From Diadema antillarum (taxonomy: Eukaryota): a stretch of 64,000 nt of DNA. The notes below the pieces were generated by a model. The model was given only the letters and a program-made list of their open reading frames with translations. It ran no database searches and had not been told where the DNA came from. The position numbers and the translations under genes are program-made. Numbering within the stretch: the first letter of the stretch is position 1; every line of letters begins with the position of its first letter. Positions 40,019 to 64,000 of this stretch are shown here, piece by piece. The DNA lies in the NCBI RefSeq assembly GCF_040938485.1, contig NW_027272008.1, positions 124,001-188,000 on the forward strand. Reading direction: 5' to 3'.

Positions 40019-40140
40019 AATACGTGGTATATGGCACCTTTTTATTGAAAAGGGAAAAGTGTGGCCCCGATACAACGGACTTCTTCCGAGGAAGGGACTC
40101 ATTATTCCAAACTTCTGTTCGTTATGCCAAATACAGACTC

Positions 40141-40180
<40 letters not shown>

Positions 40181-40376
40181 AGGACCACTAAAGTTTGAAT
40201 GAGACTTTGTATATAGACGAATGGATTTGTCATAATTATTATGAAAAGCGATGCGTCCAGCAAAGTGATGAATATATTATTTCCATCTTATTGCACGTAT
40301 AAAATCTGATTTAAGTTTTAATTCATCCAGGTAACATTTAGTTAAGAATGAAAAGTTAAATCGGAGCATCTGTTAT

Positions 40377-40507
40377 GGACTCACTGTTTAATTCCGAAAA
40401 CGGTTTCACGTCCTATCCTGGACGCTTCATCAACTCGTCTTGTTTAATGACTGGAAAACGTGCGTCAGCGCCGATGGGGAACGTTCTCTGAATTAAACAG
40501 TGAGTCC
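40377..40507 (-). ncRNA. Degenerate minimal hammerhead-ribozyme-like motif (40395-40437) inside an 18-bp inverted repeat; possible Penelope-like element remnant
   Basis: Minus strand CGAG-TTGATGA-AGCGTCC-AGGATA-GGACGT-GAAAC-C-GTT-TTCG; perfect inverted repeat 40377-40394 / 40490-40507. Confidence 0.4.
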
Positions 40508-42921: not shown

Positions 42922-42971
<50 letters not shown>

Positions 42972-44300
42972 AGTCAATAAAGTCAATGTTCAGCATTGTT
43001 AGATATGCAAAATGTGAACAATAGTTGTACGGTAATAAAATATTGCTTCTAGACTAAACCCTCCACAGTTATGGTATAGTGAGAAAAATAGTGATATATC
43101 CTTATATCTTAGGTTCTGTTGTAATTTTTTTGGAATGGTAGGATCTAGGATGTATTGGGATACAACTGACCTACACATATGCATCAAATGTGATAACTCG
43201 AACATTTTTTAAATCACTGTTCCCAATGGTATATGGCACTTTTAAACTTTGCAAACATGTCCACAAATAATGAGCAGAAACAAGGTCATTCGGACCAACA
43301 GGCATAATGATTTTTAAATTCACTGGGATAAGCATCTGTAATGTAATGATTATTCATGAGATACCTATAAATACTGCTTGCCAGCACATCCACCTGACAG
43401 CAAAAGTGGTATTTGGCAATATCAATAGAAAGAGATTGTCAATACATTCAATGCAAAATAATGAAATGGATGCTTCCCAAGTGTAAATTGACGGATCGTT
43501 CTGCTCATCTGGTCTACGCAACTCTATTCTTTGTTTGAACAGGATTGTGAATCCCATAAATTGTTATGTAAAGCTTATGCATTATGTCGCTCTAAAACGA
43601 GTTAAGTGCCCCTAACCGACTGAGAAAAGAGAAAGGTCATTCGTGCCAATGCGCCCATGAGCTAACTCCGAACTAGCTTATTAATCAATCACAAGTTGTT
43701 TGCTGCTCTCTACTGACTTAAATTTTGCAAAGCTGAGATTTCCCTACTCCTTGCCCGTTTTGGCTTAAACTTGCAGTGGTTAATTCGAACATATCAGACA
43801 TTTGAATAAGAATTACTTCAGATTAAGGTATTGGTTCCCTTTAATTCACTTTTTTTCTGCTTGATTGTAAAGATTTCATAGAAATTGTGTCTCTGAAATT
43901 GACAATATTTTTCGTGACTCGGCAGCCATCTTGTTTATGCAAATTACTTCCCAGCTGCGTTTGTGCATTTCCCTTTGATGCGGTTTTCGAGATTTGTACA
44001 TTTTCATTTACGTTTACATTTCCGGGCCTTTGTACTGCATCCCGGTTCCACAGACCGATCCCTGGCAACTGCCTAATGCCATGAAGTAATTTTATAGTAA
44101 ACGACAACTGCTGTTGTGAGCTGACTTGGTATTGGAAATGTTACGGTCCCACCCCCCCCCCCCCCCATCTCAAGTGGTCATCTATATATCGCATGCTCGT
44201 TCCCAATTCTTTGGAAAAGGGGTATATAAAATCCCGAAAATTCCTTCAAATATGACATCTTTCATTATTTTCCCCCGAAATATTTTCTAATTAGAAGTTT

Positions 44301-44335
<35 letters not shown>

Positions 44336-44604
44336 TCGGACGTGTCCATCTGTCGACCTGAGGGAAGGAAAGTACTGCCCGAGGTACATTATGGCACCAG
44401 GCAGGAGCTCACGTCCTCCCGGATAGCACTTTTCAAAGACAAAGAAGCAGAAGGAGGAGCGGAGCTAGATTTTGTTGTTGTTGTTGTTGCTGTTGTTGTT
44501 GTTGTTGTTGTTGTTGCTTAAATGTTTCTGTTTTGCAGCCCTTCATAATACGCCCGCCTACCAGCTGTGACGTTATTTCGCTAACTTCGCCCAGTGAGTT
44601 TTAA

Positions 44605-45385
44605 CCCTAACTTACCTGGGGGGGGGGGGGGGACATAATGCCCCCCCCCCCCCTCGACGAATTCCGCGACCATTCCGGCGCGCAAAATTTTTTGACCGCG
44701 CCACTCGCTGACTTTTTACTTTCAAGTCTCGCGCAACTTTTGAGACCAAATTTGTTGCGCCCGGGCATACCGTTCCGAAGCCACTCCCATTCAAAAATTT
44801 TTCGTCAACCCAAAATTGCTCAAAAACGTGATTTTGTGTACAAAATCAATACAAATTGTGTTTTTTCAATTAATTCATATAAAGATTCATATTTCTAATT
44901 TTAATGGCTGAAATCAATTTATATTAGTATAATTATGCTTCAAAAATGTGTATGACAAATTCTGCTGAAAAAACAACAAAAACAAAAGCTCGAAGAAACA
45001 AAGAAATATATTAAAAATTGATAAAACAATAAAAAACATAAGAAATTAATTTTGATACAGATTTTTTTTTACGCACAAATGTTCAGAATGTCACTAGGAA
45101 TTTTTACATAAAAAAATCCGCATTCCATAAGCTTTTAAAAGCCAATTACAGACGAAAATGAGGGGTTTTTTGCATATATTTGAATAATTAATTAATTTAA
45201 AATAGAAAATGCAAATCTTTTGAACATTTAACTGAATAATCTGGTAAATTACATCCGGCTTTATGTTCATGCAAAATTTTGCGGCGATCGCGTGATCAAC
45301 GGCCGAGATCTGAAGGGGGGCCATGTAATGCCCCCCCCCCCCCCCCCAGGAATTCAAGCTCGCTAAATAGCCCAGGTAAGTTAGG
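44605..45385. mobile_element. piggyBac-like non-autonomous element ~300 bp upstream of the GBA copy B start codon
   Basis: TTAA|CCCTAACTTACCTGGG ... CCCAGGTAAGTTAGG|TTAA. Confidence 0.7.
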
Positions 45386-45692
45386 TTAAGGTTATAGTTT
45401 TGGTATACAAAAGGCACTCCTATTGCAATAGCTTGATCATAAACATTCGACCGTTGGCTGCACTATCTTTGCCGTCGCATAACGCCAGCAGCTAGCAAGC
45501 GAGCACGGATAAAAGCGACATTGAGATATTGCTATCATGGTTCATTTCCCCGTTAGAATAGGCGACGGGGACCTGGTCAAGATTTCCACGCAATATCTGA
45601 TTTTCCGTCACCAGTTTTTGACCGGTAACTGAATGGTCAGCGTTGTCCGATCCATTGATTGACCAACTGCTGGACGCTCTGTAGTGTAGGAA

Positions 45693-48600
45693 ATGATGGA
45701 ATCGGGGAATACAGAGTCCATCAGATTTGTCTTTTATCGTATTTGTTTTCTCGTTCTTCTCTGTGCGGCCGTTCTCAAAAAGACCGGAGCTGCAAGGGAC
45801 ATCAAAGTCGGTAAGTACACATTATACGTTTTAATTGGTCCTACCTATAGGCCTACTTCCGCACATATAGAATCATTGGTGGTCGTGGAAAATGTCAGCA
45901 ACCTGTGTTTCTATGTATTCCAAATGGCTAATGGAGCAATGGAGGTAAGGCAGGGGATTCTAAAAGGGGGAGGCGCAAAGCGAGAGAGCGTATAGCGACC
46001 AAGCCCAAGTGATCGGAGTGAGCGAGGAGGAGGGTGTGGTAGGGATGTAATATATATAACACTGTTGGTCATCGTGCGATTTCATGCAGACTTTAGGTGT
46101 ACTTTTTATATTCATAANNNNNNNNNNNNNNNNNNNNNNNNNNNNNNNNNNNNNNNNNNNNNNNNNNNNNNNNNNNNNNNNNNNNNNNNNNNNNNNNNNN
46201 NNNNNNNNNNNNNNNNNNNNNNNNNNNNNNNNNNNNNNNNNNNNNNNNNNNNNNNNNNNNNNNNNNNNNNNNNNNNNNNNNNNNNNNNNNNNNNNNNNNN
46301 AAGGGGAGCGAGCCAGGTGCGCCCTTCCCCCTTGGATCCGCCACTGGTACGGTGAACACAGGGGCCCGTATTCTGCTAAAAACTTAGACCCGAGTTTAAA
46401 CCCACGCCTGGGTCTAAAGTGGGTTTTTGAGGTTTAAACCTGGGTTTAAACCACCAGTTTAGACCCAGGTTTAAACCCAAGTTTAATTTGTATTCTACTA
46501 AGTCCAGCTGTGGTCTAAATTGGGTTTAAATTAAACCTACCCAGGAGGAGGTTTATTTCGAGTTTAAATCGAGTCTAACGATGACTGGTAAGGGTACCAG
46601 CACACAGATCAATGCCAATGGCACAAAACGAGAGGCTGGCTGGATACGTACAGCAGCTAGCTTGCCGGCCACACGCGTGTACACACGAGATACGCCTACT
46701 ACATACTAGATCCAGGCTAGTACTTGTACACTTAGAAGAGACTCGAGATCTAAATGTCGTAGTTAGTCTAGACTTTACGATGAAAATAACCTGAAGACTA
46801 GACCAAGAACTCAATGCAAGACTAGAGGGTAGGTTGAGCCTGACTGAGGTCGATTTGGCATAACATGCATAGATAGACTAACGTTAACTGTTAGATCGAG
46901 AACCTAGATCGTAGGACTATTACGTTAGGAGTAGGAGTAGGGTCCTACTAACGTTAGTAGAACCTATTCGAATAGCTAGAATACATTATTGTAACGTTAG
47001 GACTAATGTTAGATCTAAAGTTAGGTTAGTGTGGTAGGTAAAATCTACTTCTAACGTTATTATCGAGACAGGGTTGATATAGTCTAGGCCTAAATTTATT
47101 TCTAAATATTTTAGAATGGTTTCCATTTTTATTAACTGACAATCTTTCTGATGCTTAAGTGCACGCCTTAACAGAAAAGCTTTTATTCAATTTCCTACCT
47201 CAAAGTCCTGGCTTGATCAATCACCAATCCATTCCGAATTCACGATTCAATCGACATAAAATTAAAAGCCATGTCCCATCCATGCAGCGCACACAGCAAC
47301 CGTGCCGCCGGCCGGCGCGGCGCGTTAAATTGGCTCTACTGAGCATTCAAAGCTAGCTAGCCAGAAATAATAGAAAGATTAAACGAGAACTTACCTGTTT
47401 GAAGTTTGATCTTTATTTCATGAGGGAGTTGGAGAAAGAATTCACAGTGAGAGAGCCCGCTCAACGCGCGCGCAGTCATACTTCGTAGCAACAAGATGTG
47501 ACTTCTGTCAGAGTGGAAAGATTGAGAACTTACTTGAAGTTGATCTATACATTTTGTAATAGTATTCATGCCATGGGAAGGGAGAGGAGGGACTGTGAAT
47601 TCTTTCTCCAACTCCCTCATAAAATAAAGATCAAACTTCAAACAGGTAAGTTCTCGTTTAATCTTTCTATTTTATTTCGTGAGTTTACGCAAGAACTCAC
47701 AGTGAGATTTTGTAGCACAGAAGTCACATTTGTTCCAACTGAACAAACTCAAGCATGCACAATGGCAAGCAAAATGTAAGCTCAAATTACCTTGGTCTGA
47801 GGTCATTATTCCCTCACAATGAGTTGTGACAGGCACTGTCCCTCTTCTTGTAGAGGTTTGTCGTAGAATTTACGGAATGTTCGTTCTTTTGACCAGCCTG
47901 CTTTTGCGAGGATCAGAGGAATAGGTGCATCCGCCCTGTTTGCTGCTGAGCTAGATGCTGCTCGGGTTGAATGTGCACTGAACATTGTGGTGTCAATGCC
48001 AGCGCCAGTCATGATTTCTTTGATCCATCGAGAAATTGTCTGTGCCGTTACTCTCTTGAAAGGCTTGCGAAAACTAATGAAGAGATGACTTTCCTCTCCT
48101 CGGATCTCTTTGGTTCTCCGAAGGTAGGCCTTAATGTATGTAACTACACACAAACGTCTGTCTGGGGGGTACGCTTTCAAAAGTACGTCCAATCCAAAAT
48201 TCCCAGGTCTAGACTGCTTAAGATGTTCATTAACTTTGAATGACACCATAGATTGTTTGAGAATCATGCTGTCTAGATTCAGGCAATGCAAAGTCTGTAC
48301 CCTCTGGGTGGATATCAAGGCCAGTAACATGCACAGCTTCATCGTTAATTGCTTCAAGCTAAGCGAGTTAGCGGGAGCTAGACTTCTCAAATATCTAAAA
48401 ACAATATTCACGTCCCAAATTTCCGAATACCGCGGCCTTGGGGGCCTGAGCTGGAACACACCTCTCATAAAACGAGAGAGAAGCGGATGAGTGCTGACAG
48501 TAAATTGTTCATCCTCTAACACTAGAAAGGTAGCAAGTGCACTCCGTGCTGAGTTAATAGCTGAATAGCTCAAGTTCTCTTCATAAAACATGTGTGTAAA

Positions 48601-51600
48601 AAACTCCAAAACAAAATTAATCTTGGCATGAAGGTGACTTTCCTTCTTAAGTGTACAAAACTTTCTCCATTTCCTTATATATGTACAATATTGTCTTTGG
48701 GTTGATGCCCTCCAAGATGCTGCCAAGATGTCCACCGTTCTGCTGCTCATGCCAGAGTTCTCGAACGGCAGCTTCAAAACCTGCAACATAACAGATCAAG
48801 GCAAGCGTGTAAAGGGTGCGGTTCCCCAGATACTGGTTGCGTAATCAAATTCCTGTGTCTAGGAATTAAGAGTGGTTCATCTTTAAGCATTCTCCTCATG
48901 CGAGGAAACCACGCTTGCGTAGGCCAGTTTGGGACAATCAAGAGACCATGTGCCTTGTCGTTTTCTATTTTTTGGAGACATTTGGGGATGAGGCAGAAAG
49001 GAGGGAATGCGTAGAAATACAGATCACCCCAATTCAGAGTGAATGCATCCACAGAAACCGCATCTGGGTCAGGCAGCCACGTAACGTACGCAGGCAGCTG
49101 CTTATTGAGTCTGGACGCGAAAAGATCAATTTGGGGAGTACCACATTTCTTAGTGATATCAGTAAAAACTTTCTTATTCAGCATCCATTCTGTTCTGTCA
49201 TTAAAATGACGAGATCTCCTGTCTGCTTCTGTATTGTCACGACCTGGTAAATAGGCTGCTGTGATCCAGATATTCCTTTCCTTACACCAAACCCAAATGT
49301 CTCGTGCTGCCCTGTCGCAGGCTCGAGATTTAATGCCTCCCATATTGTTCAGGTAGGCTACAGCTGTTGTGTTGTCAGTTCTAATGAGCACATGTGTATC
49401 ATGCAGGTGGCCGCAAAATGACTTCAAACCAAGCCCTGCAGCTAAGATTTCAAGATAGTTGATTTCATTGTTTAGAGCATGCACTATCTCCTGATCATCC
49501 CATCTACCGCCAGTTTCACTGCTTAAATCAGTGGCACCCCATCCTTGCCCACTGGCGTCAGTACGTAGCTCTAAAGCTGGCCGATCTCGACTAATTGGTG
49601 CCGACTGGCAGTGAATGTTATTGAACCACCACATTAACTCCTGTTTAGAAGCTTCAGACAAATTCATAGGTCGATCAAAATGCCCTTTGCTTGATTTTAG
49701 TGCAAGAATTTTGTCTCTTTCTAGGTTACGATAGAAGAGGGGGCCATATTGAATAGCAGGGAAAGTAGCAATCAGTTTCCCAATGACCTGCGCCACCTGC
49801 CTGATAGTAGGGTTTTGTTTCCCTAGCAATTCCGCACATACTGCCCTGATATTTTGACATTTCTCATGCGGGAGCGTTATAGTCATGCTTTCCGAATCCA
49901 AGATAAACCCCAAAAATTGGAGCCGTTGCTGAGGCTCTAGGATAGATTTCTCTGAATGAATGACAAAACCAAGGTCAGAGAGCAGTTTTGTGGTTGCTTG
50001 CACCGCTTCTAGTGCTTGTGATTCAGTTTCACCGATTATGAGAGTGTCATCTAAATACCCCACAACCAGGTGGCCTGCCTGTCGCAGCTTTGCGAACACC
50101 GGCTTCATAAGCTTTGTGAAGAGCCTAGGCGCTGTACTAAGGCCATTGGGGAGTACCTTAAATTGCCAACATTTCTCATGCCAGACAAATCTCAAATACT
50201 TGCGATATGAGGGGTGAACAGGGACAGAGTAGTAGGCATCTCGAAGGTCGATTGAGGCAAGGTAACAACCAGGGGAAATTAGGGTTGTAGCCGTATGGAT
50301 GTTATCCATTTTGAAATGCTGTACATTCAGACTGTCATTGAGGTCCGATAAATCTAAAATTAGGCGTATGTCCCCATTTTTCTTTGGGCGTGTAAAGATA
50401 TTGGACACAAATTCTCCAGCCACATGCTGGCATTCTTCGATTACGCCTTTCTCGGCCAGTTTTCGAATTTCAATGTCAATCTTGCTCTCCTCAGCATTAC
50501 CCACTCTGTAGTGGTAAGGCGGTTTACCTCTGTGAGGTGGGCTATACGCCTCTTGAAATTCAAGTTTGTAACCGCTAATTGCATCAAGTATGAAAGGATC
50601 AGTGGTAATATGATTCCACTGTTTGCTAAAATGCCTCAATCGACCCCCAACGGGCAGGTCTAATGGAACATCTACATGTTCAATGTCAAAAACTGACTGT
50701 ACAGTGTGAGTAGATTGTGTATTTCCACAACAAGAGCTAGGCCTGCAACTTACCTCCTTGGGTAGTGCAGTTACTTTCTCCGTGACACAGTGTTTGGCTT
50801 GGCTGGGGTTGCTGTCGAGTAGCTCTGCCCCCGGTTGTGCGCATGAGCTGGAGGTGGGCGAGTCTGCGTGTGCGGGGCTGAATGTCTGTATCCCCGCTGC
50901 TGCTGGCCTAAAAAAGGCCTGGATGTATCGCCAGCTGCGAGCCAGCCTGCGTTCCGATATTGCTTCCGGCTGAATCCACCGCTGGCCGTGCGCTTGTATG
51001 GGTGGTACGGCTGATGAGTAGATCTCTTAGCCTGGCCTTTAACCACACTAAAGGCAGCCCTATTCTCCTCCTTGAGATCTTTTACACGTTGTCCCAAGTC
51101 ATCACCGAATAGAAACGCGGTCACGGGCGTAGTAGGCTTGCACAGATGTGCGTAAGCAGCGTTCATATCGGGCTTGATCAGCTCCTTTCTCAGGCAATTC
51201 ATCTCGTAATTGGCATTACAGAGTAAAGCGAGTGCGTCCTGTTGCGCCTCGTTCAAGTCAGTAGGAAGAGTTTGTAGGAACGCACACAGCCCGCGGGTAA
51301 GAGATTTCTGTACTCTCTGCAGCTTAACGTCTCTGCTGCGCGTAGTCTGTGTCACATTATCCCAAATCACTGGATTGACTTTAGGGACTAGTAAGTTGGG
51401 GCAATTGCTCGGTGCTGGGTAGTTTGCCGCTGACTCTTCCATAGATTTTTCCTCCAGACAATGGGAGATGAGATAATTCGTAGAATTTGCCAATTCGTCA
51501 TTGATAGGGTCGCCCACACAGGCGGAGACCGCAAATTTTGCAGCAAAGGATGGCACTTGTACTGGCCGCCCCGTGAGCTCTGCGGGTGCGTAACCCGCTG

Positions 51601-54600
51601 CCGCCGCAGGGAAATCGCATTCATCCCCACTGTAGCTGCTGCCGCCGTGGTCGTCGTGCAGCGTACCGCGTGCTTGCGTACTATCGTCTGTAGCACACAC
51701 ATCCATGCCCCCAAACGGCACACCACCGTGGTTTTCTGCGGTACAAGCCGTGCCAACATGGCCGGCACGTAGTTGCTGTTGTTGGATACGAGTAGGCTGA
51801 GACGGCAGTATTTCCATGACCTTTTCAAACATGGATTCGAGTTTAGAAAGGCGGGAAAGCACCTCCGCGTCCGTCTTCTCTTTAGGGGGAGCTGCCTTCT
51901 TACTTAGGCCCGGTTTGGTGGGTTTTTTAAGGGTTTTCCCATTCCCTTCTTTCTTTGTTGGAGCCTTAATACTAGCCGGCGAACACTTGGGTTCATGATG
52001 CACGGCTGTAGTCACCATCGCCACGACAGACTTAGCTGTATGCAGGGCGCTCGTACTAGTGGTGCCACCCACGACAGGCTTAGCTGTATGCTGTGGGGGA
52101 GCGGAAAGCGGAATTTCCATCCCGCGATATCTCGTGAATAAAAATCCACTTCCGAAGCAAAGTCAGCTCTAACTGAGCTATAAATAATAACAATCCACAA
52201 TATGATAAGATATTGCGAAGATGCACAGTTAAAAGGACGAATAAAACTGGATTTAGACTGCGATGAGGGAACTTAGCCCCTCGTGCAAAACGTGCGAAGA
52301 AGCGATATGACTGCGCGCGCGTTGAGCGGGCTCTCTCACTGTGAGTTCTTGCGTAAACTCACGAAATAAAAATAATAGCGCTAAGCGCTACACTTACCAT
52401 GTATCCTGTGATGTGCGTCGCACACGTACACAAACTGCACAGTAATGTACAGTGCTTCACGAGTCGTCACAAGCAAAAATACGGCGGGCCCTTATTCGAC
52501 ATAATATATACCCGTAAAAACTATTCAAAATCCAAGAAAGTCACGCTCATGTGGCTGATACACTGCCAATAATAAATTTAAGTGGATTTGTGGAGAGAAA
52601 AGTACTCAGAGAGGGAGAATTTCTTCTTCCTTAGAGGGCACCATGGTGGCTTGACCCAAGACTACTTCAGGTTTAATTTAAACCCAAAATAGACTTGGGT
52701 TTAACTAAACCTCGCTAGCAGAATACAAAATTAAACCTCGGGTCTAGCTAAACCATAGGTGAGTCTAAAATGGGTTTAAACCTTGGTCTACAGTAGAATA
52801 CGGGCCACTGAATCAAGTTACGGAAGAAATTTACTCCAAAATTGAATCAATTTCGTTTAAAAAAAAGAGAAAAATATTCCTTGGAGAACGGTGAAAAAAA
52901 ATGATCAAAATCGGATGAAAAATAAGGAAATCATGACATTTTTAAATTTCAAAAATTTTCGGAAAACACTTCTTGACCAGTAAAATTAGCAAGTTGATGA
53001 AGTCATCCCTCTCATAATATCTTACTCATTTTATCTATATATACAGAAATGACAAAAATATCATATTTCAGCTGTATAAACGTAAAACTTGTCTTAAAAC
53101 CACCCAAAATAAAAAAAAGAAATTGGTATCGGAATATGCTTTTTACCTGTATTAACTAAATGTAACATTTTTCCGCATTTCATAGATAACAAACACGAAA
53201 ATAATTGTGAGGGCATGTCATCATCAGCTACGGTAGCTTATATGAATATTCATAGAGGACTGGTCAAGATAATTATGTTTTCCGAAAGAAATGTGAAATT
53301 TCAAAATGTCATATCTCCGTTATTTCTCATACGATTTTGTCAGAATTGCAACGTTCTGTAGGGATATATTTTTCTCTCTCTTTAAGAGTTTGTTTATTTT
53401 TTTTTGAGTGGTTTTCCTCTTTAAAGAGCATCCTCTTTCATATCATATTACACCATCTTTCATTTGTTATCATCCTTTGTTGAACTATAGGTTCGCCATC
53501 AGCAAAGCCATGCGTACCCAAAACCTTTCCTGGTTTCCAGGGATTTGTATGTGTCTGTAATGCCACCTATTGTGACACCGTTGCCAACTATAATCCGGTT
53601 CCAAGAGACCAGTTTGTTGTCTACACCTCTAGCAATGCATCGGACCGTCTACGCCAGCAAGTCTTCAGCACATCTAAACAGTCCAATGTAACAGGTCAAG
53701 AAAATAACTCACGTTATTTTTTGTAATCGTTAAATTATCATTTTACAAATCTTGTGTTTATACTTAATTGCAGATGAATCAGCATAGCAGCACAATTCAT
53801 ATTTGTGACATTTCTTGTCACTGTACAACTGGAATTTAATATTTAACTTGTATTCATTAGCACAAGAGCAATAAGCCAGTTTGCTGTTAGCATTGGCTTG
53901 CAATGACATCTGAACCCAGATGTTTTAAAACATGGATTAATGTTTTAAACAGATGAGCAGTTAAAAACACCTAGGCAAAAAGTGGTAGTTTAATTGTATT
54001 AGTGTTGCATGAATGGCCTTTGTTAATTTGGTTGAAAAGAATAATGTATACAATTTGACCTGTATATGCATATAGAACAGTCTCCGGACTGAAGTATGTA
54101 CCGTGCTTAAATACATGAATGAAATGAAATATAAGCCTGAAATGTTTATAACATACGATTATACTTTTCATGACAAAGGATCCAGTTCTTTAATTACCTC
54201 AGTTACAAGTCAATCTCAAGCAGTAAAATGCATCAGAGAGTCAGCAATGACCTCTATCTGTACATGTTCAGATTGTACACTGTAACCGTGAAACCGGTTT
54301 AGAGATTACAATAACTATTTTGAGAAGTTGCATCAATACAAGACCATGTTATTGTCATAGAAATGATGCCCAAATTAAGTGAGGAAACTGTGTAAGTATA
54401 TAGACCTCCATTTCCATATGATAATTATTTCACTTACACTGTGTAAGTTGTGATCACTGATTTAACGGAGAACTTTGCTCCATATTTCACATTAACTTAT
54501 AAGTATCTGAGATTAAAGTTAAAACAAGGAGGTTGCTCACCTACTATTACCTCCGTCAATGGTTGACTTAGTTAAAGGTTTCATGACAGCATGATAAAGA

Positions 54601-57600
54601 GAAGGAAACTTAATTGGTCTATGTTCCTTTCATTTTCCATTATCATATACCTCTCAGTCAGCAAAGTTTGACAATTTCTCAAAATGAACTTCCACAATGT
54701 TGAATAGTGTCTTTTGCATCTAAAAGGTAAAGATAGATTAAAATAATCCTCAGCTGGCTTCGCGAGTTTTCTGTCCTATTGACCTCATGACTGACAACAC
54801 AATCAGTGATAAGGCATGAGCTAGTTCTGCTTTGCAAATATTGGCTGTAGTTCATTGTCTTTTTCTCCAAAGCATACAGGACATGTGATCTTGCAAAGTG
54901 TGTTTCAGTTTTTTGTTTGTTTGTTTTTTTTCACCATACATACAGGGATTCTCTTCTCAGGGTGGTTGTCAATAGCGATAGTAGAAAGGAAAAGAGACGT
55001 AACTACCGTGGTGTTCTCACTGAGTTTGTGATAAGACAGGAAAATGGGGCATCAGATTTCATGGTGCACTTGTAACGCTCGAGAGTTAAACAAGATTTTC
55101 TAACACAATAGGAGAGAACGCATTAGATTTTAGGTATTTAGCCTGGAGCAATCAAATATTGTAGAGGTGCTGCTTTATTCTACACCCATGCTTCTCAATA
55201 ATTTTTAACCCAAGACCCACTTCGGCTCCTACAATTATTTTGAGGCCCGGTTAGATCAATTACAAATCTATAAAGACATCGCGGCCCACATGCAAGAGCT
55301 TCATGGCCCACCAGTGGTCCCTACCTATGGTCCACTGTTTTAAAAACATACTATAGAAACAGCAGTGTTAAGCCTGTGAGTATTGTGTCTGGAGTCGCTC
55401 TGGGCCCCGTTTTATCAAAAGATAAAATCGATTTTAAATTTCCTTACCACGCAGGCTGCCATAGACTTACAGTTGAAATCAAATATATAATCAATGTTAA
55501 CCCTTCACAAAACAGGGCCCTGAACTACTTAAGAACAGGTGTTGCTGGATTTCCCTGACAAAGGAGAAATACAGGTCTATAGTTGTTACGCAGTATTACG
55601 TTTAGACTAATCAAGTAATCAAGTGTAGATATATTTCTGTGTATCTCCGAATATTGACTCAGAGAATTGTGGAGTCAGAGCAATACGGAAATGTCTGGAT
55701 TTCTCATGGCAGAATACATGATCAAAAAAAAGAAAAAGAAAAAAAGAACAAGGCTGCAGGTGTCTCGACCAATCAAGTAAAGAAAGGATGTTTCTGTCCT
55801 TCTGTAAGTTAGGCCAGCTCCATCCCCCCCCCCCTCCCCACCATTAACTTTGGCTTGGGTCAAAATGCCCCAAATTAGGAGATCGTTGCCCAAAGTGCAT
55901 CCAGCATGTAGTCCCCAAGTCTTGAGGTTTTTAAGATTGTTTGCGTCAGATTTTTCTGGCACTACTTGATTATGCAACTGTGTTGCAGTCCATCGTTTAT
56001 TGATAATCCGTCCCTTAATTTTCCTCTTCCCATCCAAACCAGACTTTGGTGCTGTCTTAAGTGTTAACATCAGTCTTCGCTTCCAGTCAGTGTTGGGGTT
56101 TGGTGGAGCCTTTACGGATGCAGCAACCATTAACATCCGCAACCTTTCTACCGGGGCCCAAGAACTGCTTCTGAAGTCCTATTATTCCCAAGATGGTGAA
56201 CTTTCTGTTATTATTGATAGCAGTAGGCAGGGATAGTATTGATATTTGTCTTACTGTGGTATTGTGATATAGTCGTCACAATAGAGATTATTAATTATCA
56301 TTAGTAGCAGTTGTATTTTTTTATAATGATGGGGTAACGATTTATCCTGATAATCTCATTATCATTATGTAATAACTGTTATTTGATCATTTTGCCTCTG
56401 ATGAAGATTCTTCTATAGGATCGAAAGCTCAGACACCTTTTGATTTCATTTCACTGTTATTTTTCTAACATCATTGCTATATTTTGTCATCATAAATATC
56501 TTTTTGTTTGTTGTTGTTGTTGTTTTTGTTTTACTGTTATCATTTAATATCCTCATCATCATACAGTGTTTTTACTTTTCAAGTCTGTGCTAATAGTATT
56601 CTCTTGCCATCAAACAATTCCACAGGCATTGAGTACACCATCGGACGGATCCCCATGGCAAGCTGCGACTTCTCCACCCACGAATACTCCTACGATGACC
56701 ACTCCGGAGATCTCGGTCTCCTCAACTTTTCCCTGGCCAAGGAGGATCTCGTCTTCAAGGTCGATGAGTTCCACTCTCACATTGCTTTAAAATCACTGTC
56801 ACCACTGTTCTTTTATCCTGACCTATCTTCTTAGAACCTGCTTTATCATGTTTAACATTATTATTTGACGAAACATTTCCCAGAGATATCGTCAGGCAAC
56901 TTTAACTGGACGAAATAGAGCGTGGGATATCATACTCAGAGCTTGATCTCTGTGTTTTGACCAAATCTTCACAAGGATTCAGCAACTGAAATAAACTAAG
57001 TATAAACCTCCTATTTATGACCCCTTTATTTTCACGAATAAGGGTGAAACATACCCACAACTGTAACTCGACACCAGACAACCAATGCAGATAACAGTAC
57101 ATTGGACAAGGACGATAATATAGGAGGTTCACATATTTGAGAAATGTATCAGTGCAATTCTGTTACAATACTGCTTGCTTGCGAGTTCACCTGTGTATAA
57201 AGAGTAAGTATGTATGCCTTCTTTTGTTCTGCTTCCTTGAGCCCCAACTCATGCATTCTTATGGTGACCCTGCCATGTCATCATCCTTGTTCATTGCAAT
57301 TTGTTATAAACTTCGAAAATATTCTTATTCTTCATCCCAATTATCAAAAATTCTGAAACTCATCTGTCCTCAGTATAACTAATTGATAGTTGTTAAAATG
57401 TAAAAATCTAAAAATCATCCGGAGGTCTCCTTTAAGATTGCACATACTAGACAACATGATCAAGATACGGCAAGTAGGTACATTCAACAGCATGAAATGT
57501 ACCCACTACAGTACTAAACCGCATCTCTCATTTTTCTATGAAAATAATCTTTCACAAAGTCACTGGGCTATTTTGACCCCTGTTGACCCTGGTTCTATAA

Positions 57601-57822
57601 ACCCACCATCTTATTCAACAGATTCCTGTCATCAAGTCAGCTATGGGGCTCTCCTCTCGGACGGTCAAACTGTTTGGCAGCCCTTGGTCAGCTCCAGGCT
57701 GGATGAAGACCGATGGACACATGAATGGCAAGGGTCAGTTGATTGGTCAGCCGGGTGGTAAATACTTCAAGACATGGGCTCAGTACTTTGTCAGGTGAGG
57801 CAGCAGACTGTATCAACCAGGA

Positions 57823-57868
<46 letters not shown>

Positions 57869-60800
57869 TTTGATGATGCTACAGTTTTATGTTTGTTGAT
57901 GATGTTTGATGATTTCATTCTAGATTTGTATAATGTATCTTTTTATTTTTGTTGTATATGAAGAACCTTCAACCAAAAGACGTTAAATTCATTGAAAAAT
58001 GACGGATTTAGCGCCTTTTGGAAGCAAGCTCTTCATATGCTGTTGTGAGTATACGAGTTGATTCCATGATTATATTACCATATATATGGTTGGCATATGT
58101 CAAATTTTTTTTTATTCTTTATTTATTTTTCTTTTTGGTTTAAAAGAAAAATATCAGTGGGATTGATTCATAATCGAGTTATTTATGTTGAAGAGAGATT
58201 TTGGCAGTATAGATTTAAAAATGGATTTGTTTTGTGTTTTGAATTGTATTTGTATTGTTCATGTTACACCCAGAATGGATTAATTGACGAATGATTTGAA
58301 TGAAATCAATAAATATACAATGGTAAAAAAAAAGAAAATGTGTGTTCTTGGAATTGCACTACAATATATAAAGTTATGAAATCTGTATGTGTTTTGCTTT
58401 TGTAGATGCATTTCTTGACCCGTCGCAATCGGCGGTCATCCGAACCGTCGTATATACCCCGATTTTCGGTCAAAATAAAATATTCGATTTCGAGATTTTC
58501 ATTCATTTCGATTGTGGACATTCCGTTTTATACATATTGTGATTTTTTTTTCAGTTTCGAATTTGATGGAATATTTTTGTAATTATCACTTTTTATAGAG
58601 TTTTGTCATTTCATTTGTTCATTTCCCCATAGGCGCTCGTGTTAAAAAACGCAAACAAAAAAGAGCGCAAACAGTACGCGGTCAACCAAACCGTCATTAT
58701 TATTATATCTGACATATTGACTTGGTGCGAAGTAATGATATGGTAATTAAATATCGTATAATATTGCAGATATCATGTTGTTGAATTTGTGATTAGTAGT
58801 GTGTGTACATCTCATTGTCCATGAAACCTATTGGAATTAACTGTCCCTCGTATACCGTTGCTAACTCACTCTCGGTTTGGGCGAATTGTTTTTAATTGTC
58901 ATTTATCATTGTTTTTGCCATTTTACTAGATTCGTTCAGGAGTATGCAAAGCAGAATGTTTCCCTCTGGGGGCTGACGGTCCAGAACGAACCGATGGACG
59001 GCCTCATTGGAAACTTCTCCTTCCAGGCGATGTACTACAGTGCCAGCATGGAGCGAGACTTTGTCAAGCTGGACCTGGGACCAGCCCTGGAGGCTGCTGG
59101 GTTCCAGGACCTCAAACTGATGATGATGGATGACCAGAGCTTCAAACTGCCCAGCTGGCCCCAGACTGTAAGGATTTCACCCACAAGTCCATGAATAATA
59201 TATTTTCTTTGGGATTTATGTTTCATCTGTAATATCACTGCAAAGTTATTGAATCTTTAATCTATTGCAATGATGTAGGGGAAATTGTGATTCAAGAAGT
59301 GTGTCAAATAAATTAAGTGTAATAACTAAGGAGAGATAACTCTTTATTGTGGGGAGAATTACAGACTTCCTACTTTTGCAGATGTTAACTAAATCTCTCC
59401 CCTCTTATCTATCTTTTCTCTCTCTCTCTCTTTCCCTCTCTTCCTCTCCCTTAACATACATTATACCTTCTTGTGACGAGGGTCGCATAAAAGATATACA
59501 TATAGTGCACGTTGACTCCATAAATCAAGGGATGAAGAGGCGAAATGTTGCCATGGTGTACAACATTTTGGATAGACTATGTCTTTAATATTTTTCAGTT
59601 CTTTCCTTTCTTTTCTTGTCTTTCTCATCACAAGGACATTTCATNNNNNNNNNNNNNNNNNNNNNNNNNNNNNNNNNNNNNNNNNNNNNNNNNNNNNNNN
59701 NNNNNNNNNNNNNNNNNNNNNNNNNNNNNNNNNNNNNNNNNNNNNNNNNNNNNNNNNNNNNNNNNNNNNNNNNNNNNNNNNNNNNNNNNNNNNNNNNNNN
59801 NNNNCCTACGTCTAATATAAATAAGATGGCACATGCAAATAATTGAATGCTCTTCCCTTCGACTCGGCAATTAAACTATGCACTCTATCAGGAGTGCAAG
59901 GAGGGTGCAGGTGGTCCAAAATAAGAGCCCTATCATACCTCTTTCATGTACATAACATAATGATTATTCTACGTGATTGGGCATCTGTCTCTGTCAGTCT
60001 GAGTATCCATTATCACTACCAATGCTGCTTTAGTTCAGTGAAAAATACAAGAGCAATTAGGAATACGGAAAGATACCCTGTGGGCCTGTATAAGGAATTT
60101 TGAGGTCTCTTCGTACAGAGTATTTGCAGCGCACCCTACCAGGAGAACTATTTCAAAGGTACGTATCAAGAGGAACATGTCGTCCATCAGTTATTTGGGG
60201 AAGAAGAAATATGACATCAAGACTATTGAGTCAAGATTATTGTATCTATCATAAAAATGATTGATGTCGTGATTCACATTGCAAGTGCAGAGTCTTGTCA
60301 GGTCCATATCTCAATACATTAAACATTTTCATATGAGAGTTAAACAAGTTTTGTCAAAAACTGATTTGAGAATAGTAGCTTGAATCATGTGAAAAACTTT
60401 CGCTCGCACGAAGAGGGTCGCATTTCCCCCTTCTATACTACTCTCTTCTCTCAGATTCTTGGCGACAAGGATTCAGAGAAGTACCTCTCGGGGATTGCAG
60501 TTCACTGGTATCTAGACAGGTACACCCCCGTGGGTCTAAAGCTGTCAGAAACCCACAGCCTCTTTCCCAACCACTTCATGCTCTACTCGGAGGCGTGCTA
60601 CGGCGCCGCCTTTTCTGACGGGCGAGTGGATTTCGGCAGCTGGTCTCGCGGGGAGGGATACAGCCAGAGCATCATCAACGTGAGTGCAAGCCTTGCTCTG
60701 TATGGGCAGGGATGTCCCTGGTATGGCTAGGGAGGTGGGATGCGAGGGCGCTTTACCCAATATTCACTGATTAATGTGGCAAAAGTAGAGTAGAGAAAGC

Positions 60801-63800
60801 TCGGGAGTTGGGAATTTGAGAATGGGGCACACTGGCACAGAGGACGGGGGACAGGGAACCGAATGTGGTCTCAACTGATGACAGAATGAACACCGAAGGT
60901 GATGTGCCCCGCAGCTTTGCATAGTTTTAGGTGTTTCTTGATCGGTTCACTTTGGGATTGTTTGCTTTCAGTAAGCCACCTTGAGGTGTTCGGTCCGGGT
61001 GCTGTTCGTTATTCCGAAGGTTCGCTATTCCGAAGGTTCGTTATTCCGAAGGGTCGTTAATCCGAAACACACAAATTCCCTATACCTAGAGGTTCGTTAA
61101 TCCGGAAATGAAAAAGGGTTCGTTAATCCGAACATTTGTGGCGTTATTCCGAAGCTTCGTTATTCCGAAGATTCGTTAATCCGAAAATGAAATTCAGAAC
61201 AATGAACCTTCGGAATAACGAATCTTCGGACTAAAGAGCCGTCGGAATAACGAACCTTCGGAATAACGAGCTGTAACCGTTTGGTCCATGCCTATTGAAA
61301 TCTACTAACATGTTGCTGAAAACAGGAATGCAAGATTACAAAAACTGCAAAATCGAAAAATACAATCTAAACATAAAAATGTGGGGATGTGAGATTCTAG
61401 AACCTGTGTAAATCGTGGATGTGTTCTGCCTTCTTAACGTCTTTTCTCACTTCATTATACACTCAATCATTTATTGAATTTCTTTGTATCTTAATAACAT
61501 AGTACATAGTGATCAAACCATCTGCAGTGCAGGAATCAGAAGGAACACGAGAAATATGCATAATAATAGTTAACTAATCTAAGCAGCCAATAGTGTTATG
61601 AACCCTGCACAAGTACACGAAGAAAGATGCTCCTTTCCGTACTGGAAAGAACACAGTGTCCCACAGTGTGTTCACAGTGTGGTCACATAGTCGACTATGT
61701 GAAAAAGATAACAGTGTGGAGATGATTTCACACTGTGATTTAGTTTTCACAGAGTGTTCACATGGTATGTTCTGTGTCACACTGTGAATTGATGATTCAC
61801 AATGTGTTCACACTGTTAAAACGCTCGAATTTAACAGTGTGAAGAGATTTCACACTGTGTTCACTGTGTTCACACTGTGTTTCTCACACTGTGGGACACT
61901 GCGTTATTTCCAGCAGGGTTAGGAGATGTTCCTACCACGTATTTTGTCAACTTGGTGATTGCCACATTTGTTGTTGTTTTTTTGTTTTCTGTTCAGGTAA
62001 TGAATCACTGGGTGACAGGCTGGGTGGATTGGAACCTGGTACTGAATCTCCAAGGAGGACCAAACTGGGTCCACGGCCATGCTGACAGTCCCATCATTGT
62101 AGATGCCGCTCAAGACATATTTTACAAACAGCCCATGTACTACCATCTCGGCCACTTCAGGTAAAATCTCAGAATCACAAATAATCAGGTGTGTTGTACG
62201 TGTCCCCCCCCCCCCCAAAAAAAAAAGAGCTAACAACAAACATTGTACATACAAAATAAAAACAGTTATCTACTGTAAGTGCTACCCCCTAACAAAAACA
62301 AACAAACAAACAAAACAAAACAAAAACCGCACTTGACACAAAAAACTGTAAATGGTTCAGATATGATTTTACTGGTTTACTAGGAAGGTATGGCGAGATG
62401 GCTTAGTCATAGAAACATGCTTGCTCTGCAGTAACGGAGCTTTGGTTGAAAGTCCAGTGAATCGAGTTGAGTACTGTCGTTTGTTACACTCTTTCCTTCC
62501 TGTTAATAGGCAAAATATTCCCCCCTCAGATAGAACATAAATTTTGAGATATGTGTGTTGGTGATTCCCAACCCCCCCCCCCCTCAAATAGGTAGATATC
62601 GTAAAAGCTAGAACAGGTAATTAAGGTTTTGCTATAGTGATCCAGCCAGATCCTAATCCTGACCCAGAATCTTTAAAAGGATGCATGCACAGTTCTATGG
62701 TGTATAAAAAGAGACTTATATTTGTGAGGTTTGTACTTTCCGTGTACTGCTAAGTTTAAAATTAAATCAAGAACTGTTGGCAGCCACACTTGAGATTAAA
62801 GGATTAACAGTCAATTTCCAGTTTTGTTGCTGACATATCTTCAGCTGTACAATATACCTTAAGTGGGTTCAATCTAACTTATTTTTTAAATCTATTGGCA
62901 AAACTTCAGTTAATGTTACCATGCATCGAAAACCAACAAAAAGTCGCACTCCCCAATTCTAACTGAGTACTAAAAAAATGAAATGGGTCAATCAAGTCAA
63001 TCTTTACTTTTTTATGATTTCTGAAAGAGCAATTCTTCTTTTACATAAGTTTGCAATAATTATGAAGTAAAAAAAGTGGTAACTTGTGGGGGGCTCAGTT
63101 TTCTTGAACTTTTTTTTGTTGTAGAACATTGTAGTTAGGTATATGTTTACAGGCTCCGTTACATTTCTTAGACGAATCCCTTTCGTACTCTTCCCTTCCA
63201 ACTGTACCGTTTTGAAAGTTAGTATAAGCTATAGATAGAATGTCTGCATCAAGAGTGTGCAAAAATTGTCAGCCTAATCCGATAATCTTCTCATGCGGTT
63301 GCTGTGCAGTGTTACTTTCTGGGGTTTTTCCCCCCATTCAGTGTACAGAGCGATGTATACTTATGTTTTGTGAGATTTGGTGCTTGAATAGCTAGGTCCC
63401 TTACCTTCAAGGCCTCTTTTCCAGTGTGTACTTTCTTTCCGATGTTTAGATAGGTTTTAAAATAAGTCTATTTGTATTGATTTATACATCATTTTTTAGC
63501 TTAGAGTCTGCTCTTTTAGAATATGCCATTAACTAATAATCTGTGTGACAGGACTTTTTTTTTTCGTGGTTTTGTGATGCAGGGTCACAACGATGTTTCT
63601 CAAAGTAGGAATCTCCTCCATTTTCGTGAAAAGTTGATTATGTAGTGATGATCTACAAATCAGGCCAAAGTGTGAATATACTGAAGCAGTACCAGCAGTG
63701 TAGAAAGCAATTTATGAATATACTTTTGATACTTTGAATATTAAAGTTTGTTATGATAGATAATGTCTCTTGTATAGTTCTTATGGATTTGTTTACCTTT

Positions 63801-64000
63801 CATGATGTACTATATTTAAAGTAGTCCTCATTAAACTGGCTTTCATCACCAATATTAAAAGATGTTTTTCAACAATGATAGATTTAAAAGAATTAAGGGA
63901 ATGAATAATTTGGTAGAATATTCATGCATAATTACATCATGACATGGTGTGTATTGTTGCATTTCAGTAAATTTATCGTGCCAGGTTCTGTGCGTGTGGG
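45693..64000 (+). CDS. GBA1: Lysosomal acid glucosylceramidase (GH30), copy B, 3' end beyond the window
   Basis: Exons 45693-45810, 53491-53694, 56043-56195, 56626-56759, 57622-57794, 58930-59167, 60455-60679, 61997-62160, 63968->64000; the eight complete exons match copy A in length and phase; GT-AG; no stops; both catalytic Glu motifs (QNEP, SEAC) intact. Confidence 0.92.
46118..46300. other. Assembly gap (183 N)
   Basis: N run. Confidence 1.
47806..48789 (-). CDS. DIRS ORF3, tyrosine recombinase
   Basis: 327 aa; catalytic set STQRVQTL (R), HLKQSRPG (K), HSTRAA (HxxR), AGW, RKFY (Y). Confidence 0.92.
   Translation of the reverse strand: MLQVLKLPFENSGMSSRTVDILAASWRASTQRQYCTYIRKWRKFCTLKKESHLHAKINFVLEFFTHMFYEENLSYSAINSARSALATFLVLEDEQFTVSTHPLLSRFMRGVFQLRPPRPRYSEIWDVNIVFRYLRSLAPANSLSLKQLTMKLCMLLALISTQRVQTLHCLNLDSMILKQSMVSFKVNEHLKQSRPGNFGLDVLLKAYPPDRRLCVVTYIKAYLRRTKEIRGEESHLFISFRKPFKRVTAQTISRWIKEIMTGAGIDTTMFSAHSTRAASSSAANRADAPIPLILAKAGWSKERTFRKFYDKPLQEEGQCLSQLIVRE
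48774..51026 (-). CDS. DIRS ORF2, reverse transcriptase-RNase H-DAM-like methyltransferase; frame open from 51026, first ATG only at 50309
   Basis: [14 protein letters not shown]-terminal motif, [70 protein letters not shown]. The track's 50639 start is TTG. Confidence 0.92.
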   Translation of the reverse strand, partial: EIYSSAVPPIQAHGQRWIQPEAISERRLARSWRYIQAFFRPAAAGIQTFSPAHADSPTSSSCAQPGAELLDSNPSQAKHCVTEKVTALPKEVSCRPSSCCGNTQSTHTVQSVFDIEHVDVPLDLPVGGRLRHFSKQWNHITTDPFILDAISGYKLEFQEAYSPPHRGKPPYHYRVGNAEESKIDIEIRKLAEKGVIEECQHVAGEFVSNIFTRPKKNGDIRLILDLSDLNDSLNVQHFKMDNIHTATTLISPGCYLASIDLRDAYYSVPVHPSYRKYLRFVWHEKCWQFKVLPNGLSTAPRLFTKLMKPVFAKLRQAGHLVVGYLDDTLIIGETESQALEAVQATTKLLSDLGFVIHSEKSILEPQQRLQFLGFILDSESMTITLPHEKCQNIRAVCAELLGKQNPTIRQVAQVIGKLIATFPAIQYGPLFYRNLERDKILALKSSKGHFDRPMNLSEASKQELMWWFNNIHCQSAPISRDRPALELRTDASGQGWGATDLSSETGGRWDDQEIVHALNNEINYLEILAAGLGLKSFCGHLHDTHVLIRTDNTTAVAYLNNMGGIKSRACDRAARDIWVWCKERNIWITAAYLPGRDNTEADRRSRHFNDRTEWMLNKKVFTDITKKCGTPQIDLFASRLNKQLPAYVTWLPDPDAVSVDAFTLNWGDLYFYAFPPFCLIPKCLQKIENDKAHGLLIVPNWPTQAWFPRMRRMLKDEPLLIPRHRNLITQPVSGEPHPLHACLDLLCCRF
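50771..52120 (-). CDS. DIRS ORF1, Gag-like protein
   Basis: 449 aa, ATG in good context (GGGATGG); coiled-coil-like [18 protein letters not shown]; [29 protein letters not shown] block typical of DIRS ORF1; lies between the 5' ITR and pol. Confidence 0.85.
   Translation of the reverse strand: MEIPLSAPPQHTAKPVVGGTTSTSALHTAKSVVAMVTTAVHHEPKCSPASIKAPTKKEGNGKTLKKPTKPGLSKKAAPPKEKTDAEVLSRLSKLESMFEKVMEILPSQPTRIQQQQLRAGHVGTACTAENHGGVPFGGMDVCATDDSTQARGTLHDDHGGSSYSGDECDFPAAAAGYAPAELTGRPVQVPSFAAKFAVSACVGDPINDELANSTNYLISHCLEEKSMEESAANYPAPSNCPNLLVPKVNPVIWDNVTQTTRSRDVKLQRVQKSLTRGLCAFLQTLPTDLNEAQQDALALLCNANYEMNCLRKELIKPDMNAAYAHLCKPTTPVTAFLFGDDLGQRVKDLKEENRAAFSVVKGQAKRSTHQPYHPYKRTASGGFSRKQYRNAGWLAAGDTSRPFLGQQQRGYRHSAPHTQTRPPPAHAHNRGQSYSTATPAKPNTVSRRK
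55403..55519. mobile_element. ~120-bp Harbinger-like MITE with CTG target duplication
   Basis: CTG|GGCCCCGTTTTAT...AAAACAGGGCC|CTG. Confidence 0.65.
59645..59804. other. Assembly gap (160 N)
   Basis: N run. Confidence 1.
60991..61279. mobile_element. Foldback-like MITE built from inverted arrays of TTCGTTATTCCGAA
   Basis: Several direct copies of GTTCGTTATTCCGAAG on the left and their reverse complements (TTCGGAATAACGAAC) on the right. Confidence 0.7.
61630..61900. repeat. Degenerate CACAGTGTG/CACACTGTG minisatellite with inverted halves
   Basis: Read directly; GBA copy B intron 7. Confidence 0.65.

Follow-up and report, generated by a model that had tools for sequence, protein, structure and literature searches.

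Introduction

One of the closest described systems for the genes analysed here is human GBA1, a much-studied disease enzyme (Gaucher disease, Parkinson risk); the design of inhibitors and chaperones for it centres on Asn396 and on loops 2 and 3. The glycone in human GBA1 is hydrogen-bonded by D127, W179, N234, E340, W381 and N396 (PMC7271948), and Asn396 bonds the O6 hydroxyl of glucose (PMC9298352). The glucose site is lined by S345, N396, F397 and V398, with loops 1-3 as a cap (PMC3226326), and the alkyl-chain groove, i.e. one of two grooves for the lipid tail, lies between loops 2 and 3 (PMC6222826). A lineage-specific duplication of GBA1 has been described in Drosophila, in which one of the products GBA1a and GBA1b is a true glucocerebrosidase while the role of the other is unclear (PMC8000066). 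Here, we analysed a stretch of 64,000 nucleotides from the sea urchin Diadema antillarum (RefSeq assembly GCF_040938485.1, contig NW_027272008.1, positions 124,001 to 188,000 of the forward strand), hereafter referred to as the window and numbered from its first nucleotide, which contains two head-to-head glucocerebrosidase-like genes 17 kb apart on one contig, i.e. copy A (20144-28985, minus strand) and copy B (45696-64000, plus strand).

Copy B differs from copy A at the active-site entrance, and it is well supported that this divergence is derived, maintained and directed at the active site rather than the result of decay or an artefact. Copy B is probably a functional, Diadema-specific GH30 paralogue with a rebuilt active-site entrance and a shifted preference at C6 of the sugar and/or at the aglycone. 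As judged from sequence and models, it is reasonable to expect that copy B prefers a different sugar or aglycone.

Results

Loop 3 of copies A and B

The proteins encoded by copies A and B are ~93% identical, differing at 40 of 545 residues and, in DNA, at 80 of 1638 nt; inside the window, synonymous divergence (dS) is 0.089 and non-synonymous divergence (dN) 0.025. An initial annotation of the window, made from the letters alone, had drawn attention to five clustered changes in loop 3, all of them non-synonymous and lying within near-identical flanks. Re-reading of the sequence at both positions gave the same codons. Loop 3 of copy A (21547-21558, minus strand) reads CAG AAC TAT GTT, i.e. Q-N-Y-V, which is the ancestral state, while loop 3 of copy B (62072-62083, plus strand) reads CAC GGC CAT GCT, i.e. 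H-G-H-A, in which the O6-binding Asn396 is replaced by Gly. All five changes are non-synonymous and fall within 11 nt. The 77 nt downstream of the cluster are identical between the copies, the nearest upstream difference is the codon for A384V 31 nt before the cluster, and the 214-nt exon block that holds loop 3 is 93% identical. phmmer alignments to GBA1 chains in the PDB confirmed the human numbering that had been assigned, with H-G-H-A at 395-398, V at 384 and D at 188, and the same alignments also fix W381, W179, E235, E340 and loop 2.

Other differences and identities that had been listed were likewise found in the window. In copy B, the codon that changes NLAL to NLVL is GTA (62039-62041) where copy A has GCA, and the codon that changes KTNG to KTDG is GAT (57712-57714) where copy A has AAT. 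N396T and N188S, which had been named as Gaucher alleles, both occur in the Gaucher literature (PMC3349595). Both catalytic Glu residues are kept, and the motifs QNEP and SEAC are present in copies A and B. In copy B, QNEP (58982-58993, plus strand) holds the acid/base Glu equivalent to human E235 (codon 58988-58990) and SEAC (60587-60598, plus strand) the nucleophile equivalent to human E340 (codon 60590-60592). Finally, exons 4 (56626-56759) and 7 (60455-60679) encode the same peptides in the two copies, and exon 4 is the same even in DNA; these identical exons reflect gene conversion, beyond constraint alone.

Within the window alone, a cluster of five differences in 11 nt has P = 0.056 against a background of 80 in 1638 nt, and an unbroken run of four replaced residues has P = 0.013 against 40 in 545 residues. 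Taken by itself, the loop 3 cluster is thus a modest and only marginally non-random signal; it is the comparative data that make the signal solid.

The A/B arrangement in other Diadema contigs

Six Diadema proteins were taken from the 90% cluster of the nearest database protein, and their loci were retrieved and re-annotated. The six genes are one A and one B gene each from the window, from a second D. antillarum contig (JBFRCO010000140.1; A140 and B140) and from Diadema setosum (OZ188192.1; the A gene is referred to as Aset). The A orthologues are XP_071511381.1 and XP_071488611.1 in D. antillarum, XP_072167012.1 in D. setosum and P0158 in Lytechinus pictus. Of these, JBFRCO010000140.1 runs colinear with the window at 92-96% and probably represents the other haplotype.

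Each of the six genes is made up of ten intact exons, one of which encodes the signal peptide, with GT-AG boundaries at every intron. Loop 3 is QNYV in all three A genes and in the L. pictus orthologue. By contrast, it is HGHA in copy B of the window, HGHA with GGA as the Gly codon in B140, and HGHDA with an extra GAT in D. setosum. Thus, loop 3 of the B genes has no substitution between species and only an in-frame Asp insertion in D. setosum, while its Gly codon varies synonymously between GGC and GGA.

The initial annotation had asked whether HGHA could be an assembly error or an allele of a single locus, and whether copy B has disabling lesions beyond the window. The loop recurs, as HGHA or HGHDA, beside a QNYV gene in two further loci, and exons 9 and 10 of copy B are intact in the public contig. 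The change is also derived in copy B, given that outgroups have N396 and V398. Two of the differences that had been counted as features of copy B did not hold as such: N188D (GAT, 57712-57714, plus strand) is shared by copy B of the window and D. setosum B, while the second D. antillarum B has N, so that it is not fixed, and A384V (GTA, 62039-62041, plus strand) is private to the copy B allele of the window.

Between the two D. antillarum contigs, identity is 98% for the A introns and only 85.7% for the B introns, and several B introns differ between these contigs as much as they do between species. Similarly, dS is 0.065 between copy B of the window and B140 and 0.029 between the A alleles; old B haplotypes, mosaic conversion and a difference in copy number are all candidate causes. 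Loop 4 (human 237-248) also varies among the B genes, with L240I, I241V, G242A and S245A in B140 and I241V and N243H in D. setosum B, and is identical in all A genes and in copy B of the window. Variation within the B genes was not significantly enriched in the capping loops (P = 0.07).

Fixed differences are concentrated in loops 2 and 3

Fixed differences were scored between the unconverted A genes (A140 and Aset) and the three B genes. Eleven amino-acid positions are fixed and different, i.e. 344, 345, 346, 348, 350 and 351, 395-398, and I517L. With loop 2 taken as 342-354 and loop 3 as 394-399, together 19 residues with bounds from the human literature (PMC6222826, PMC3226326), ten of the 11 lie within these two loops (hypergeometric P = 1.7e-15). 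Moreover, the loops hold 11 non-synonymous changes in ~44 sites compared to ~10 fixed synonymous changes in 373 sites gene-wide (odds ratio 12, P = 8.5e-7).

Loop 2 of copy B (60602-60625, plus strand) reads G-A-A-F-S-D-G-R over human 344-351, with S345A and loss of the aromatic residue at 348, and is common to the three B genes. A140 and Aset read DSTFYDVH over the same positions, and D-S-T at 344-346 is also present in the L. pictus orthologue; positions 344-346 are thus derived in B within the clade. In loop 3, each of the four B residues is derived, the corresponding residues being QNYV in L. pictus, ANYV in a hemichordate and RNFV in a mammal. The other sugar-site residues, i.e. R120, D127, F128, W179, N234, E235, Y313, E340, C342 and W381, are the same in A and B.

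As a donor of the loops, micro-conversion from a known paralogue was considered and rejected: the 12-mer of the motif and a relaxed pattern were found only in B genes in the window and five loci. Similar loops were present in none of the other echinoid paralogue groups examined.

Gene conversion, age of the duplication and selection

Copy A of the window is not a typical A gene. Codons 365-399 in its exon 7 are in the B-type state, while codons 351 and 404 keep A-type synonymous states, and the codons of its loop 2 (22211-22188) are identical to those of copy B (60602-60625). The conversion tract lies at 22165-22322 (minus strand), with a minimal extent of ~22281-22179, and measures at least 105 nt and at most 158 nt. 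Introns 6 and 7 of copy A are 99.8-100% identical to those of A140. Copy A of the window is, therefore, a natural chimera with a B-type loop 2 acquired by a short conversion and an A-type loop 3. It follows that the initial annotation, in comparing the two copies of the window, saw only half of the contrast between A and B.

Paralogues are no more diverged at synonymous sites (0.10-0.18) than orthologues are (0.11-0.15). The introns, however, sort by type: identity is 79-80% over 5.5-6.9 kb between orthologous introns and 75-76% over only 2.5-3.9 kb between paralogous ones. In a protein tree, L. pictus is sister to the Diadema A and B genes (support 100/99), and the B genes of both species unite (95/94). 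The sorting of the introns together with the tree place the duplication before the split of D. antillarum and D. setosum, with exons partly homogenised since. We conclude that the inverted A/B duplication arose after the diadematoid-camarodont split and before the two Diadema species split.

dN/dS between the B genes of D. antillarum and D. setosum is 0.21-0.25, which is below 1 with P ~1e-8 to 1e-10, and 0.18-0.23 for the A genes; by this measure, B overall gives no sign of relaxed constraint. The distance to the L. pictus orthologue is equal for the two types, at 71.2% identity for A and 70.9% for B. As far as these comparisons reach, the asymmetry between A and B is confined to the loops. 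The proposal of asymmetric neofunctionalisation rather than decay thus stands in so far as the B genes are intact and under purifying selection, but the asymmetry is found only in the loops and not gene-wide. Positive selection on the whole gene was also considered but is not supported: the branch between the types has ~12 fixed non-synonymous and ~9 synonymous changes (omega ~0.4), so that the signal is site-specific only.

Altogether, an assembly error, an allele of a single locus and decay are removed as explanations because the same loop recurs, the six genes are intact and B is under constraint.

GBA-like genes in sea urchins

Diadema has at least five GBA-like genes, and the sea-urchin genes fall into four old groups and the Diadema-specific B. 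In a set of 196 full-length homologues, 182 have N396, 170 have V398 and every one has W381; position 345 is S in 66, F in 39, Y in 25 and A in 14. His takes the place of N396 in one old echinoid group (D. antillarum P0280, L. pictus P0271 and Strongylocentrotus purpuratus P0275), and both catalytic Glu residues and W381 are kept in this group across Diadema, Lytechinus and Strongylocentrotus. A gene of this family can thus lose N396 and still keep the catalytic dyad over long periods. The group also has I-D/A-H-K-L in loop 3, a longer loop 2 and Q/N at 244/246. By its residues, the His396 group is a second, much older candidate for altered specificity.

A literature search on sea-urchin GBA paralogues returned nothing relevant, and a search of 50% representatives returned no representative more than 72% identical to exon 8 of copy B. 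The remodelling of the B loops is undescribed in the literature searched, while the genes themselves are already annotated.

Structural model and proposed mechanism

An AlphaFold2 model of copy B has a mean predicted local distance difference test score (pLDDT) of 92.2 and a predicted template modelling (TM) score of 0.92. It is weak only at the 12-residue N terminus, in loop 2 (pLDDT ~60) and in loop 3 (74-82). The best PDB matches to the model are human GBA1 chains (5LVX, 1OGS and others), with TM scores of 0.92-0.98 and a root-mean-square deviation (rmsd) of 1.4-1.8 Å; in the top superposition on human GBA1, the TM scores are 0.94/0.98, the rmsd 1.4 Å and the identity 48%. Of five glucose-binding residues, i.e. 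D127, W179, N234, W381 and N396, copy A has all five and copy B four, with Gly at 396.

Copy B would, in this model, be a paralogue of the Diadema lineage that has kept the machinery of a retaining GH30 beta-glycosidase and in which the active-site entrance has been rebuilt. N396G is predicted to drop the ligand of O6 and V398A and S345A to trim the site, while the aromatic residue at 348 is lost and two His residues would stand beside the C6 pocket. Together, these changes may widen the pocket at C6 and, at acid pH, raise the positive charge there. Preference would then shift at C6, i.e. towards xylose-like, 6-deoxy or 6-O-substituted glucosides, and/or at the aglycone, with the E235/E340 double-displacement mechanism presumably still at work. 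Selection on such a new preference might in turn shield both loops from erasure by conversion.

A more specific version of this model, to which we give only a slim chance, is that B-type genes represent a new specificity within GH30 subfamily 1 for O6-substituted glucosides, e.g. sialyl-alpha2-6-glucosylceramide, and that the loops are held apart by selection against conversion. The hole left by N396G and the flanking His residues could receive an acidic substituent at lysosomal pH, and B might cleave between glucose and ceramide with the sialic acid still in place, or act as a transferase for such sugars. Gangliosides of sea urchins carry sialic acid on O6 of the glucose of glucosylceramide (PMC2063370); to link copy B to such a substrate is speculation.

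Gene models

Comparison of inverted repeats and BLAST pair the region at 20.9-27.7 kb (minus strand) with that at 53.4-64.0 kb (plus strand) in 8-10 conserved blocks. Exons are numbered as in the urchin genes, and exon 1 encodes the signal peptide. Copy A is a complete GBA1-like (GH30) gene with ten coding exons (minus strand: 28985-28871, 27613-27410, 26039-25887, 25592-25459, 24203-24031, 23543-23306, 22358-22134, 21633-21470, 21009-20881 and 20246-20144), and all of its introns are GT-AG. Its open reading frame of 545 amino acids matches RefSeq XP_071511381.1 (P0316; D. antillarum) at 100% over 472 compared residues. Copy B is likewise a GBA1-like gene with GT-AG introns throughout. Its exons 1-8 (plus strand) lie at 45696-45810, 53491-53694, 56043-56195, 56626-56759, 57622-57794, 58930-59167, 60455-60679 and 61997-62160; exon 9 begins at 63968 (plus strand) and leaves the window, and its remainder lies with exon 10 in the public contig beyond. 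From exon 2 onward, the open reading frame is 100% identical to RefSeq XP_071511384.1 (P0317; D. antillarum). Both RefSeq models are on contig JBFRCO010001120.1, which is the public record of the window's contig, and both genes already have the RefSeq label 'lysosomal acid glucosylceramidase-like'. The GH30 TIM-barrel domain is followed by the GH30 beta-sandwich domain in both copies (copy B: PF02055, E 2.5e-140 and PF17189, E 4.8e-14; copy A likewise).

Exon 1 of copy B (45696-45810) has an ATG, a hydrophobic leader, a GT donor and a phase that fits exon 2. It is homologous to exon 1 of copy A (143 nt, 86%), and a promoter-proximal block is also common to the two copies. The RefSeq model of copy B bypasses this signal-peptide exon and begins with a 12-residue exon at 52307-52342. 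The source of these first 12 codons is a terminal inverted repeat of a DIRS retrotransposon (47444-52342) in intron 1 of copy B; the same 36 nt are present in inverted orientation at 47444-47479, so that the two inverted terminal repeats of the element are 47444-47479 and 52307-52342. The insertion is haplotype-specific: intron 1 of copy B measures 7680 nt in the window and 1461 nt in the other contig.

In four sequencing runs compared with 59810-64000, only short contigs of DNA and stacked repeats matched, and none of them covers 62050-62189; these runs speak neither for nor against the loop codons or their expression. In intron 7 of copy B, the segments 60930-61350 and 61630-61910 reach depths of tens of thousands to more than 1 million in Diadema-related DNA runs, with many internal joints; these segments belong to a very abundant short repeat family.

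Neighbouring genes

A GBBH-like/TauD dioxygenase gene, annotated in the second contig with Pfam PF06155 and PF02668, lies between copies A and B in both D. antillarum contigs; in the window, colinearity alone places it at ~29000-45600 (plus strand). The gene starts within ~50 nt of exon 1 of copy A on the opposite strand, which suggests a bidirectional promoter shared with copy A. In D. setosum OZ188192.1, as in the second D. antillarum contig, A is followed by B and then by a third GBA paralogue. This third GBA-like gene is 6-7 kb downstream of B on the same strand (L001, D. antillarum, ~32200-35300; L002, D. setosum, ~23800-26500) and belongs to the P0199 group, whose S. purpuratus orthologue is P0174; A, B and this gene thus make up a cluster. 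In the window's contig, the 10 kb that follow B contain nothing similar.

Discussion

Several observations weigh against a functional copy B with a shifted preference. The loops were chosen after the data had been seen, which inflates the significance of the enrichment, although the bounds are from the human literature. Three of the six loop 2 differences (348, 350 and 351) cannot be polarised. The two clusters comprise 15 nucleotide changes, of which 11 are weak-to-strong, and a mutational or biased-conversion contribution to the origin of the clusters is possible. The RefSeq models of all three B-type genes are without the intact signal-peptide exon, which could reflect weak or atypical expression, and an element of ~5 kb sits in intron 1 of copy B in the window. 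No RNA run carrying the copy B stretch was found on record, and a collection of 5.8 billion proteins held no transcript-derived fragment spanning exons 7-9 with HGHA. Finally, Drosophila GBA1a keeps every active-site residue and has no detectable glycosidase activity (PMC8000066).

These points bear differently on the alternatives. Copy B could be an ordinary, perhaps weaker glucocerebrosidase that is kept for dosage or for a different expression, with the loop changes as drift or as a residue of mutational bias or biased conversion. The weak-to-strong bias of the clusters fits such an origin, as do a catalytic centre that is unchanged save for N396 and S345, the variability of position 345 among homologues, the B-type loop 2 that copy A of the window carries without visible harm, and the equal distance of A and B from the outgroup. 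Human N396T is, moreover, a disease allele that is not known to be a null-type lesion. We nevertheless regard this explanation as unlikely: ten of 11 fixed differences fall into two substrate-touching loops (P ~2e-15), the loop differences outlasted a conversion by which the exons nearby were homogenised, 93% of the homologues keep N396 and 100% keep W381, loop 3 is free of substitution between species apart from the Asp insertion in D. setosum, and the fixed synonymous differences between A and B are without the weak-to-strong bias.

It is improbable that copy B has lost hydrolytic activity and is a non-catalytic binding protein or has an unrelated role, as proposed for Drosophila GBA1a. The loss of the O6-binding Asn and the searches for copy B transcripts, which returned none, are consistent with a loss of activity, as is the fly paralogue, in which a perfect active site did not ensure activity. 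Against this stand both Glu residues and nine other pocket residues, which are kept in all three B genes and in two species, purifying selection over the whole protein, and the long conservation of the His396 echinoid group with both Glu residues. Hardly any weight can be given to HGHA as an assembly or consensus error, or to A and B as alleles of a single locus, given that A and B are head to head in one contig with the TauD-like gene between them and that both the arrangement and the loop recur in the second D. antillarum contig and in the independent chromosome-level assembly of D. setosum; such a reading would require one error common to all three assemblies. In total, we favour copy B as a functional paralogue with a rebuilt active-site entrance.

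The locus is not a new kind of system, i.e. it is a pair of GH30 GBA1-like paralogues already annotated in RefSeq. Its interest is that the two proteins differ almost only in the loops and thus form a natural test set for the recognition of C6 and of the lipid, to which copy A of the window adds a natural chimera with an A-type loop 3 and a B-type loop 2. In evolutionary terms, the paralogues are homogenised by conversion, yet two short segments of the active site have remained distinct and fixed in both species. If the reading of B as an enzyme for O6-substituted glucosides were true, the locus would be a natural experiment of conversion versus selection. Sea urchins have at least five GBA-like genes, among them two groups without N396, which fits their unusual glucose-based gangliosides.

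Compared to human GBA1, copy B has the same fold and domains, the same E235/E340 pair and the same R120, D127, F128, W179, N234, Y313, C342 and W381, and the six exon boundaries checked by way of the PDB alignments are at the same residues. Unlike human GBA1, it has R395H, N396G, F397H and V398A and a rewritten loop 2, in which S345 has become A and W348 has become S; both A and B have F in place of Y244, and B belongs to a multigene set while the human gene is single-copy. The A orthologues share 91-95% protein identity with B, the ten-exon structure and the inverted neighbouring arrangement, but A-type genes keep QNYV and an invariant loop 4, and the Diadema A genes have the DSTFYDVH loop 2 save for the allele in the window. 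The His396 group is only ~50% identical to B and, in contrast to the Diadema-specific B, stems from an old duplication common to three urchin genera. As in the case of Drosophila GBA1a and GBA1b, the Diadema pair is the product of a lineage-specific duplication of GBA1; however, the fly copies are 47% identical and have identical active-site residues, whereas the Diadema copies, at ~93% identity, differ at little else than the active-site entrance.

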